Shown one piece after another: positions 28,601 to 31,600 of a stretch of 64,000 nt of DNA (the first letter of the stretch is position 1; each line of letters opens with the position of its first letter). The notes under the pieces were generated by a model. That model was not told the DNA's origin. It did not search any database and saw nothing but the letters and a program-made list of their open reading frames with translations. The position numbers and the translations under genes were made by a program. The stretch is from Octopus sinensis. Taxonomy: Eukaryota. Where the stretch lies: assembly GCF_006345805.1 (NCBI RefSeq), contig NC_043002.1, positions 93,558,001 through 93,622,000 on the forward strand, given 5' to 3'.

Positions 28601-31600
28601 TCATTAATTTTCTGTTTATTTGAAACAATGAGTTTGTTATTTTATAAAAGTGTTGATGTTGGATTATTTTGTAGCATTGTTGAAAGCTTCTAAGTTAGAG
28701 ACTTCGATAATTGTTTAATCATAGACCAAGATAATTGTTGAATTAAAACCCTAGGTCATTGTTGAGTTACATTATGTTTTAGACGAGATAAACTATTCTA
28801 TCGACTGAATTGTAAAAGAACTACTGTTTCACCTTTGCAGTTGTGAGACACCTAACTGTGAAAAATGATATCACTTCCAAAATATAGATTGGATATTAGT
28901 GTAAAGATGCATATTCTGATATATAAAGTCATAGATGACAGAGAAATAGTTTGATAAAATTTTATTTAACAATAAGAAAATTCTAATGTTATGCCAAATG
29001 GTTTTGTAACTGAAAACAAAGACTTTCTTTCACCTGAGGATATAACTGAAATTCTGCATTATTTTGAAGGATTGCATTAGTGCAGACATGCAATTTATTT
29101 ATTATTAAATTTAATAATATAAATTACTTACATGTTTTTAAGTTATGAAACAATTTGTCATGATATTAGAATTTTCTTATTGTTAATCAAAATTTCATCA
29201 TCGTTTAGCAACCGCTTTCCATGCTAGCATGGGTTGGGCAGTTCAACTGGGGTCTGGGAAGCTAGAAGGCTGCACCAGAACCAGTCTGATCTGGCAATGT
29301 TTCTACGGTTGGATGCCCTTCCTAACACCAACCACTCCATGAGTGTAGTGGGTGCTTTTTACGTGCCACTGGCACGGAGGCCAGGCCAGGCTGGTAAAGG
29401 CCACAATTGGATGGTGCTGTTTACATGCTACCGGCACAGAGGCCAGTTGGGGCGGTTCTGGCAACGGCCACGTTTGGATGGTTCTCTTATGTGCCACCGG
29501 CACTGGTATCACAGCTACAAATTCCATTGATGTTGATCGATTTTGATTTTGTGTATCATACTATATATTCTATATTTTTTATAGAAAGATACATGAAGGA
29601 GCCTTTTTTTATGAATTCTACTGGATTACTCGAATCTGTATTTTGTGACACATACGCATGCATGCACACACATGCATACATACATACAAACAAACAATGT
29701 TTGCTTTTATGTCAAGTTACTTATAAAAACAATTTAACATTAAACTGAAAGATTACTCAATACTTTTTAGTAGAGTACATGTTTATTAAACTTTTGCCAG
29801 AAGAGCCATAACATTGATTTCAAAGTTTTGGCTTGCTTGTCTTTGACAAAAGTTAGCAAGCTGAAACTTCAAAGTCAGTGTCACTCTTCTTGTAAAAGTT
29901 ATATATATATATAGTAAGGTGCCAAGAACACCATCCGAGCATGATTGTTGCCAGAGCAGCCAACTGGCTTCTGTACCCGTGGCACGTAAAAGGGCACCAT
30001 TCGAGCGTGATCATTACCAACGTCGCTTCACTGGCACGTGTAAAAAGATTTGAGCGAGGTCATTGCCAGTACCGCCTGACTGGCCCCCATGCTGGTGGCA
30101 CGTAAAAAGCACTCACTACACTCTTAGAGTGGTTGGCGTTAGGAAGGGCATCCAACTGTAGAAACTCTGCCAGATCAGATTGGGGCCTGGTGTGGCCTCC
30201 TTGCTTGCCAGCCATCAGTCAAAATCGTCCAACCCATGCTAGCATGGAAAGCGGACGTTAAATGATGATGATATATATATATATATATTTAATCAATATA
30301 GGGTGGCAAAAAATTTTGTAGAATTTTTTTGCCACCAGCGGCCTAGTGGGAAAAAAATTAAATAGTCATAGACCATTTTTAAGTTCAACATCACAATCAA
30401 GGAACGGCCATAATAGGCCATTCTCCCATCTGTTCCGACTTGGCTATTTCTTACTGATGAATCTAAGGGCCTATGGTAGATTGGCTTGATTTAATTTAAT
30501 CAGGTTAGTTTACCATTAAACAGTAGATGAAACGGTGCATCGTATAAGAAATTACAGGGTAAATGTTTTTTTAATTTTCTCCTGGTTTACGGAATTGATG
30601 TTATTTTGCGGTTGAAGCTTTTGGCTGTTATTTCTAGTGGGTGAATGGCCTATTATGGCCGTTCCTTGATTGTGATATATATATATATATATATATACGT
30701 GTGTGTGTGTGTGTGTGTGTGTGTGTGTGCAAATATCTAAGATTTACAAAGCTATCAAGATTAGTGCAGCTATTTTGTTTTCAATAGTGTAAAAGTAGGA
30801 ATCCAACTAATATTCTGTATTAATTTCCTGGGTTCAAGGATTAGTACAAGGCTGCCTAGTTAAGGCTAGTGTTGTTGTGGTTAATGGTACTGAATAGCAA
30901 CAGAAACATAGAATCCATTACGTGTCTACACCTACTGATAGTATTTATACAATCATCATGTATAATGCATTATTGATTGCCTCAATAAACGAAGAATATT
31001 TTAAAATTTCCTAAAAGCTTCCAAAAGTATTCAAAGTATATAAATTCTTTTGTAAACTTCCAGAGTAATTTGTAGATATTAGTCATTGTGTTCTGAAATT
31101 GTGAGGTGATATCAAACAGTTCCTGGATATGTTATGTTTAACCCTTTCGTTACTGTATTTATTTTGATACGCTCTGTGTTTCTTTCAATTACTTTAAATA
31201 TAACAAAGAATTTAGTAAAATATCTTAGTTATCATTGAGCTAGTGTTAGGAACATAAATTGTGACTAATTTTGGTGGAAGATTTTCATTCAGAATGTATG
31301 AAAACAAGACATTTATACTGAGTCAGAGCCGGTTTCAGCCGGGTTGGTAACAAAAGGGTTAATAAAAAAATAACTTATTTAATAAACTTTTAACATCATC
31401 TCCTTTGACATAGTCACCTTTCACAGCAATACATCAGTCCCAGCATTCCTGCCACTTTTGGAATCCAGCCTAGAAATCCTTTTCTGTAAGTGAGTCAAGG
31501 ACCTTCTGCGATTCACTCTTGATCTCAATAAGTGTTAAAACAGTGACCTTTGAGCTGCATTTTTATCTTGCCACTCAAAACATTATGACCCATTACCTCA

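Follow-up and report, generated by a model that had tools for sequence, protein, structure and literature searches.

A type I hammerhead ribozyme motif within a species-specific insertion in MNAT1 intron 5 of Octopus sinensis

Does a hammerhead ribozyme in an intron of an essential gene act on its host, or has it merely been carried there by a mobile element? The question is raised by a 64,000-nucleotide stretch of the Octopus sinensis genome (NCBI RefSeq assembly GCF_006345805.1, contig NC_043002.1, positions 93,558,001–93,622,000 of the forward strand; hereafter the window, in whose numbering positions are given), which contains MNAT1, the gene for MAT1, a core subunit of the CDK-activating kinase (CAK) and TFIIH. 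As read from its letters, the segment of 107 nt at 30446–30552 on the plus strand, in sense orientation within intron 5 of this gene, is a genuine and structurally complete type I hammerhead ribozyme. The motif is very probably borne by a transposon and not conserved. The full explanation that we favour, with moderate confidence, is a type I hammerhead carried by a small non-coding piece of a retroelement that was recently inserted into a (TA)n tract, the retroelement most probably being a Penelope-like element (PLE) or its non-autonomous derivative, a retrozyme of the non-long-terminal-repeat (non-LTR) type.

Helix I of the motif is formed by ATTTCTTA (30446–30453) and TAAGAAAT (30545–30552), which pair over 8 bp; it is open-ended, and the three helices are arranged around the core in the type I topology. 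The catalytic core, read from the letters and with a descriptor, is composed of CUGAUGA (C3–A9, 30454–30460) and GAA (G12, A13, and A14; 30529–30531), between which lies the whole helix II arm of 68 nt (30461–30528). This arm opens with the pair A10.1–U11.1 and consists of a proximal helix II of 5 bp (ATCTA/TAGAT, 30461–30465/30524–30528), a 7 × 7 internal loop, and a distal stem of 19 bp (30473–30491/30498–30516), which is capped by a UAAUUU loop and contains exactly five G·U pairs. It is possible from the modeled structure that the internal loop, located 5 bp from the core, serves as loop 2, the partner in a tertiary contact. Helix III (30532–30535/30540–30543) comprises the pairs A–U (A15.1–U16.1), C–G, G–C, and G·U with a UGCA loop, all 12 nt of the segment 30532–30543 being self-complementary, and is followed by A17 of the GUA triplet (30544), with cleavage predicted between 30544 and 30545. 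All 13 conserved core positions of type I hammerheads are correct, including A30532–U30543 and H17 (A30544). Each of the elements that an initial annotation of this DNA had listed was thus found in the letters, and its assignment to the type I hammerhead consensus stands, with the core and three helices present. The annotation had also stated that the five G·U pairs of the 19-bp stem work on the plus strand only; they do indeed turn into A·C mismatches on the minus strand, and helix III holds one further G·U pair, so that the structure exists only in plus-strand RNA.

The motif was searched for with two descriptors, one for the type I core with three helices and H17, with which both strands of the window were scanned, and one for motifs of the dimer type, whose helix III is self-complementary. 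Both gave exactly one match in the window, namely 30446–30552, and neither found further hammerheads in the rest of the 64 kb or in related octopod loci totaling 56 kb. The rate expected by chance was estimated from Markov-shuffled windows with varied minima for helices I/II/III: the relaxed descriptor (4/3/2 bp) gave 0.13 matches per shuffled window, minima of 6/4/3 bp gave 0.004, and those of 6/5/3 bp gave 0.0009, while the observed lengths (8/5/4 bp) gave 0 matches in 3400 shuffled windows. The single-window significance of the motif is high, with ~5e-5 matches expected per 64-kb window by extrapolation. In a genome of 2–3 Gb, this rate would permit a few accidental motifs, and weight is therefore carried by the added features: the 19-bp stem that pairs on the plus strand only, the self-complementary helix III, and the species-specific insertion described below.

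Eight exons of the host gene were located on the plus strand of the window by using a human MAT1 sequence as the query, and the joined exons match the Pfam family MAT1 (PF06391) at 1e-48. The nearest homologue is the annotated MAT1 of Octopus bimaculoides, whose 90% cluster includes the O. sinensis and O. vulgaris proteins, and the O. sinensis MNAT1 locus (GCA_006345805.1, CM016864.1) is identical to window positions 19609–39693. The O. sinensis MAT1 protein is obtained when exon 5, whose last base is 28582, is joined to exon 6, whose first base is 34001, and intron 5 (GT..AG, plus strand) is thereby defined as 28583–34000, between coding exons 5 and 6. Cleavage is predicted at a distance of 1962 nt from the 5′ splice site, with 3456 nt remaining to exon 6. 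Thus, the initial annotation was right in placing MNAT1 on the plus strand with the hammerhead in sense in intron 5, and its statement that every MNAT1 pre-mRNA carries the motif is valid for this allele.

The origin of the motif becomes apparent from the MNAT1 locus of O. vulgaris, which aligns with ~96% identity up to 30300 and resumes from 30675. The O. vulgaris site is empty and reads ...GATGATGAT(AT)19 ACGTGTG...; deletion of 30289–30676 from the O. sinensis sequence restores it, with a single substitution among ~280 flanking bases. The whole insertion that carries the ribozyme is accordingly 388 bp in length (30289–30676, plus strand; 36% GC) and is placed between the two halves of a split (TA)n target: 18 nt on the left (30271–30288), in the tail of an upstream short interspersed nuclear element (SINE), and 20 nt on the right (30677–30696), followed by (TG)n. 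The two halves together equal the 38 nt of the O. vulgaris tract, and this exact additivity favors an insertion in the O. sinensis lineage over a deletion in O. vulgaris. Within the insert, a left segment unrelated to the rest (30289–30389), with a hairpin of 15 bp (30302–30316/30322–30336), precedes the left arm (30390–30428) of a 39-nt inverted repeat, whose right arm (30638–30676) forms the 3′ end of the insert. In contrast to the G·U-bearing stem of the hammerhead, the two arms are Watson–Crick complementary at 38 of 39 positions, pointing to an inverted duplication at the DNA level. Intron 5 of O. bimaculoides and that of Argonauta hians contain no counterpart of the element. The presence of the motif in related species, which had been put forward as a check, was therefore not borne out, nor does the motif occur at orthologous sites as a conserved (domesticated) intronic hammerhead does. 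Taken together, the compared sequences suggest that the element was inserted recently and cleanly in the O. sinensis lineage, its target being the (TA)n tail of an older SINE.

Two further insertions specific to O. sinensis, a miniature inverted-repeat transposable element (MITE) and a SINE, are located no more than 2.1 kb away, making three within 2.5 kb together with the hammerhead insert and indicating high transposon activity since the split from O. vulgaris. The MITE is of the piggyBac type (31142–31358, 217 bp), with the termini CCCTTT.../...AAAGGG and TTAA at 31138–31141 and 31359–31362; its site in O. vulgaris is empty, with a single TTAA (positions 13402–13405 of the O. vulgaris locus sequence, L003), and a related copy is found elsewhere in the same locus (L003 8983–9202). 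The SINE (32512–32717) occurs in O. sinensis only, and its flanks in O. vulgaris overlap by 7 bp (L003 14565–14571), probably a target-site duplication.

We next consider whether the motif is likely to cleave. The motif RNA folds with −33.8 kcal/mol on the plus strand (z = −5.6) and −18.8 kcal/mol on the minus strand (z = −3.2); the better fold of the plus strand, together with the five G·U pairs, argues for a structure at the RNA level. The hammerhead-compatible fold has −30.9 to −32.0 kcal/mol and lies 2–3 kcal/mol above the fold of minimum free energy (−33.8 kcal/mol), in which the core is sequestered. In the nearest-neighbor ensemble, pairing of U4–G8 with CAUCG of helix III has a probability of ~0.45 and the helix III hairpin one of ~0.03. 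In the model, the real competitor of the active fold is this pairing of U4–G8. The initial annotation had named another structure as capable of refuting the ribozyme, namely a hairpin of ATCTA with an alternative TAGAT: the site exists on the plus strand, at 30477–30481 instead of 30476–30481, but the hairpin is rejected as the dominant fold, the pairs of proximal helix II having probabilities of 0.85–0.99. Because the 12 nt of helix III are self-complementary, two copies could dimerize; the predicted homodimer has −81.1 kcal/mol versus 2 × −33.8 kcal/mol, with a 12-bp intermolecular helix III and both cores free. Three features argue against fast cleavage of the monomer: the A–U pair at 10.1–11.1, the core-sequestering pairing, and the lack of a partner hammerhead in the 64 kb. 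On the side of cleavage, the core is intact, and helix III, with 4 bp and a tetraloop, is stronger than that in most animal hammerheads. Hammerheads of invertebrate retrozymes with a helix III of 2 bp cleave as monomers at ~0.8 per min (PMC7229834), and those of the PLE type show low activity in vitro (PMC4209133). Catalytic competence is a prediction, and a lone monomer at the MNAT1 locus probably cleaves slowly or never.

The features of the insert are best compared with those of PLEs and retrozymes. In metazoans, type I hammerheads whose helix III is short and palindromic typically belong to the pseudo-long terminal repeats (pLTRs) of PLEs and to non-LTR retrozymes and act as dimers (PMC4209133, PMC7229834); the initial annotation had pointed to this likeness, and helix III and its loop are indeed self-complementary here. 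PLEs have hammerheads near the 3′ end and a bias for microsatellite and (TA)n targets, and their copies are 5′-truncated, often have next to them an inverted truncated copy that gives rise to inverted repeats, and bear a tail at just one of the two ends (PMC8557442). In work with a purified PLE protein, both strands of the target were cleaved and extended, and reverse transcription began at two internal sites of the RNA (PMC11167929). The octopus insert agrees with the bias for microsatellites, splitting a 38-nt (TA) tract into 18 + 20, and its layout may be that of a PLE copy, with the right arm of the 39-nt inverted repeat terminal, the left arm internal, and an additional segment of 101 nt, as seen in one copy and with a tail longer than described. 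Retrozyme monomers are 150–450 bp in length with a GC content under 45% (PMC7229834), ranges in which the insert, with 388 bp and 36% GC, also falls. Recently active Penelope-like families are present in O. vulgaris (31 families with 336 insertions; PMC13282606). Retrozymes have been argued to be non-autonomous derivatives of PLEs, whose solitary monomers are scattered through genomes, and in Xenopus ~43% of retrozyme copies overlap introns, yet are depleted there (bioRxiv 10.64898/2026.07.22.740005).

The class of the retroelement, the mechanism of insertion, and the lack of an effect on MNAT1 are inferred. The insert may have been produced by two target-primed reverse-transcription events from the 3′ region of the element RNA, on opposite DNA strands. 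One event would have given a direct 5′-truncated copy (30429–30676), in which the hammerhead lies ~125–230 nt from the 3′ end, and the other a short inverted copy (30289–30428), starting ~100 nt further downstream on the RNA, with 30289–30389 as the putative tail. A direct and an inverted copy side by side would explain why one arm of the 39-nt inverted repeat is terminal and the other internal. In the parent element, the ribozyme would process the element transcripts, probably best as a dimer through the self-complementary helix III, whereas at the MNAT1 locus it would be transcribed passively in every pre-mRNA, with an effect on splicing that would be small and not selected.

Several observations weigh against this interpretation. 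The pair at 10.1–11.1 is A30461–U30528 in place of the conserved G10.1–C11.1 of type I hammerheads, and the helix II arm is unusually long for a hammerhead. The G–C pair at this position is highly conserved in hammerheads (PMC4209133), and compensated changes of it are seen in the hammerheads of cricket satellites (PMC2837043); the A–U pair is atypical, not disqualifying. The Rfam covariance models of the hammerhead clan (CL00010) give zero matches in the entire window at gathering thresholds, so that the search with Infernal suggested by the initial annotation did not recover the motif; in the E-value mode, the single match around the site is Hammerhead_3 with 12.4 bits, in the wrong register and below the threshold of 48.5 bits. 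The 68-nt helix II arm is the probable cause of this blindness. No second copy of the element was found by pattern search, blastn (word size 7), or the hammerhead descriptors in the window and the 56 kb of octopod loci, among them the MNAT1 loci of O. bimaculoides, Argonauta, and O. vulgaris, and membership in a family and homology to PLE pLTRs are accordingly putative. Pattern scans of metagenome, prokaryotic-genome, and viral collections gave 14, 1, and 1 matches, respectively, which are without helices I or III and are chance matches; neither the motif sequence strings nor octopus was found in the supplement of PMC7229834. Other copies were also sought through spurious open reading frames (ORFs) of the element, but a search for homologues of a 55-aa frame, exact look-ups of ORFs of 42 and 47 aa, and a phmmer search with a 65-aa minus-strand frame against 1.84 billion representatives found nothing. 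The site, a 388-bp non-coding insert flanked by orthologous intron, contains no ORF for a reverse transcriptase (RT) or a GIY-YIG nuclease. The putative tail is ~100 nt in length versus the 30–40 nt described for PLEs. Known retrozymes are tandem repeats, whereas the insert has one unit and the 64 kb contain no other hammerhead; as a retrozyme, it could only be a solitary monomer. Finally, a target-site duplication is unreadable inside a microsatellite, and the direction of the insertion or deletion is derived without an outgroup, O. bimaculoides being unalignable here, and rests on the additivity of the (TA) tract.

The competing explanations differ in what carries the motif and in what it does. 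The carrier might be a DNA transposon (a MITE or foldback element with the 39-nt inverted repeats, 30390–30676) that brought along or captured a hammerhead and was inserted at a TA. The near-perfect inverted repeat, the many TA targets in a (TA)n tract, and the rank of Tc1-Mariner as the most active group with terminal inverted repeats (TIRs) in O. vulgaris (PMC13282606) would suit such a carrier. The segment missing in O. vulgaris is, however, 388 bp long with the left arm 101 nt inside it, so that the insert is not bounded by the repeats, and no target-site duplication is measurable, whereas the true MITE 470 bp downstream (31142–31358) has terminal TIRs and a TTAA duplication. Since, in addition, G·U pairs as in the hammerhead arm are typical of evolution at the RNA level and animal type I hammerheads with such a helix III have been described in retroelements (PMC4209133, PMC7229834), we regard a DNA transposon as unlikely. 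Somewhat less probable still is that the element is ancestral and older than it appears, the copy having been lost in O. vulgaris by recombination or slippage between the (TA)n tracts. Direct microsatellite repeats in the flanks can mediate deletions, and no outgroup is alignable at the exact spot, but recombination should have shortened the O. vulgaris tract, which is exactly 18 + 20 = 38 nt, and the inverted-repeat arms are matched at all but 1 of 39 positions, beside two other O. sinensis-specific insertions within 2.1 kb that attest to ongoing insertion activity. The identity of the element is the same under either history. There is little to recommend the idea of a hairpin-rich repeat in which CTGATGA and GAAA occur by coincidence and which was never selected as a ribozyme: the rate of ~5e-5 per 64-kb window does permit a few motifs in 2–3 Gb, the Rfam models fail to score the one copy, and its 10.1–11.1 pair is atypical; on the other hand, 13 of 13 core positions are right, helix III is self-complementary over 12 nt, the 19-bp stem forms on the plus strand only, and the motif lies within a species-specific insert that makes up 0.6% of the window and has retroelement-like insertion features (PMC8557442).

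As doubtful as coincidence, in our estimation, is a function of the hammerhead for MNAT1, in which co-transcriptional self-cleavage of intron 5 would compete with splicing or release a defined intronic RNA and so tune a CAK/TFIIH subunit. The sense orientation of the motif in intron 5 and its intact core are compatible with this idea, as is the length of helix III, which is 4 bp versus 1–2 bp in most metazoan hammerheads, retrozyme types with 2 bp being able to cleave as monomers (PMC7229834). Competition with splicing would require cleavage of the monomer within the time of transcribing 3.5 kb, the 3456 nt to exon 6 taking about a minute or longer to transcribe. Such a mechanism is possible in principle and has precedents, as related in PMC10919898 (citing Fong et al. 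2009): splicing is lowered by fast intronic ribozymes, and the host mRNA of the Cpeb3 ribozyme is tuned by it. Against these points stand the A10.1–U11.1 pair replacing G–C, the low probability of helix III (~0.03) relative to the core-sequestering pairing (~0.45), and the lack of a partner hammerhead in the window for dimer formation. Moreover, PLE-type hammerheads are weak in vitro (PMC4209133), slow ribozymes leave splicing undisturbed (PMC10919898), and the depletion of Xenopus retrozymes from introns fits mild harm better than function (10.64898/2026.07.22.740005). With the O. vulgaris site empty and no counterpart in intron 5 of O. bimaculoides or Argonauta, there is no sign of selection for an effect on MNAT1. 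The action on a core CAK/TFIIH subunit that the initial annotation had entertained is therefore unsupported, and our best estimate from the compared sequences is a neutral or slightly deleterious passenger, in keeping with the retroelement fragment favored above.

Among known systems, the octopus motif shares with the hammerheads of PLE pLTRs (Cervera & de la Peña 2014, PMC4209133; Craig et al. 2021, PMC8557442) the type I topology, a self-complementary helix III that allows dimers, a long helix II, a position in non-coding sequence close to the 3′ end of the element, and occurrence as a solitary motif, as is the case for most genomic copies; the insertions would be alike in being 5′-truncated, with frequent adjacent inverted truncated copies and a preference for microsatellites. 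In contrast to the minimal hammerheads of PLEs, which are without a helix III hairpin, the octopus motif has a real hairpin of 4 bp. It also differs from PLE hammerheads in having no unpaired nucleotide between A9 and 10.1, an A–U instead of a G–C pair at 10.1–11.1, and a 19-bp extension of helix II past the internal loop. Non-LTR retrozymes (Cervera & de la Peña 2020, PMC7229834; Li et al. 2026 preprint, 10.64898/2026.07.22.740005) resemble the insert as short, AT-rich, and non-coding units that have a single type I hammerhead and are predicted to pair strongly with themselves; their solitary monomers are scattered, many in introns, and a PLE origin has been proposed for them. They form tandem repeats that give rise to circular RNAs, whereas the octopus insert has one unit and one cleavage site, from which neither a unit-length nor a circular RNA can be released on its own. 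Nor do retrozymes have an inverted repeat such as the 39-nt one seen here.

Another hammerhead-bearing element, Sm-alpha of Schistosoma mansoni, resembles SINEs and has a Pol III promoter. For 30289–30389 of the octopus insert, a SINE head derived from tRNA was considered and rejected (0 genes by ARAGORN and no Rfam tRNA match in 30270–30460). The sequence CGGCCTAGTGG at 30340–30350 agrees with the Pol III A box (TRGCNNAGTGG) in 10 of 11 nt and is followed 42 nt downstream by AGTTCAACATC, which weakly resembles a B box. Unlike Sm-alpha, the insert thus has no detected tRNA-like head and only this 10/11 A box, and the motif has no recognizable similarity to the canonical loops of the Schistosoma type. 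Sm-alpha, in the account available through PMC6155905 (citing Ferbeyre et al. 1998), is similar to the insert in being a short, non-autonomous, and dispersed retroposon with a type I hammerhead.

Intronic ribozymes offer a further comparison. The amniote hammerheads in the RECK and CTCL introns (HH9 and HH10 in Rfam; PMC6155905) are also of type I and in sense within introns of protein-coding genes, and are thought to be derived from retroelement hammerheads. They are conserved at orthologous sites in birds and mammals, whereas the octopus motif is missing even in the sister species and, unlike HH9 and HH10, is below the thresholds of the Rfam hammerhead clan. The intronic ribozyme of CPEB3, which resembles that of hepatitis delta virus (PMC10919898), is alike as a working model, in that intronic self-cleavage timed against the transcription of the downstream exon modulates the host mRNA; it is of a different class, conserved in mammals, and has measured kinetics, whereas the octopus motif is known from sequence.

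Additional observations concern the insert and its target. In the pre-mRNA, the inverted-repeat arms (30390–30428/30638–30676) may form a 39-bp duplex around the ribozyme, the whole insert having a predicted −142 kcal/mol (z = −9.6), and such intronic double-stranded RNA could be a substrate for ADAR editing in a cephalopod. At its 3′ end, the insert reads GGCCGTTCCTTGATTGTGAT(AT)n, similar to the GGACGTTAAATGATGATGAT(AT)n of the SINE 3′ end (30657–30695 versus 30253–30291), and the octopus SINE with the latter ending is abundant, with at least 14 copies in the window; the likeness of GGCCGTTCCTTGATTGTGAT and GGACGTTAAATGATGATGAT could be due to chance or to a tail recognized by the same reverse transcriptase. 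The (TG)n beside the target (TA)n (30697–30730 versus L003 12972–12992) is 12 nt longer in O. sinensis, the total of (TA)n being equal. In the remainder of the window, RhoGAP-like exons are located upstream (440–4382, plus strand), and a pseudouridine-synthase gene (PF00849; 44075–49359, minus strand) lies downstream in an arrangement also found in O. bimaculoides and Argonauta, together with an uncharacterized ORF of 363 aa (58781–59872, minus strand). Four fragments of mobile elements were recognized by eye (13215–13727, minus; 46225–46512, plus; 50112–50408, minus; 61429–61740, minus). They include the C-terminal region of a reverse transcriptase of a long interspersed nuclear element, two mariner-type transposase fragments, and an integrase-like fragment, and none of the four resembles a Penelope-like RT or GIY-YIG ORF.

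The locus represents neither a new kind of system nor a conserved regulator and is of modest interest. Animal genomes are known to contain from hundreds to tens of thousands of type I hammerheads in fragments of PLEs and retrozymes, and introns are a frequent location. It is an instance in which a first-pass reading of the letters caught a hammerhead that the Rfam models miss, probably owing to the long insertion in helix II. It is also conceivable, with a chance that we put lowest among the readings considered here, that the element belongs to a currently mobile cephalopod retroelement family with an undescribed hammerhead architecture (A10.1–U11.1, an internal loop of helix II as the tertiary-contact partner, a 19-bp extension, and invisibility to Rfam) and that the ribozyme works as a monomer, cleaving the MNAT1 pre-mRNA of O. 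sinensis to a measurable extent; if true, this would mean that a ribozyme had altered the expression of a CAK/TFIIH subunit in one species in the short time since its divergence from O. vulgaris. The favored reading, a retroelement-borne passenger, suggests that hammerhead-bearing retroelements have been mobile recently in the O. sinensis lineage. It provides a dated example of such an element landing in sense in an intron of an essential gene while the sister species keeps the empty site, and the pair of filled and empty alleles constitutes a natural experiment for asking whether host splicing is affected by a lone retroelement ribozyme.

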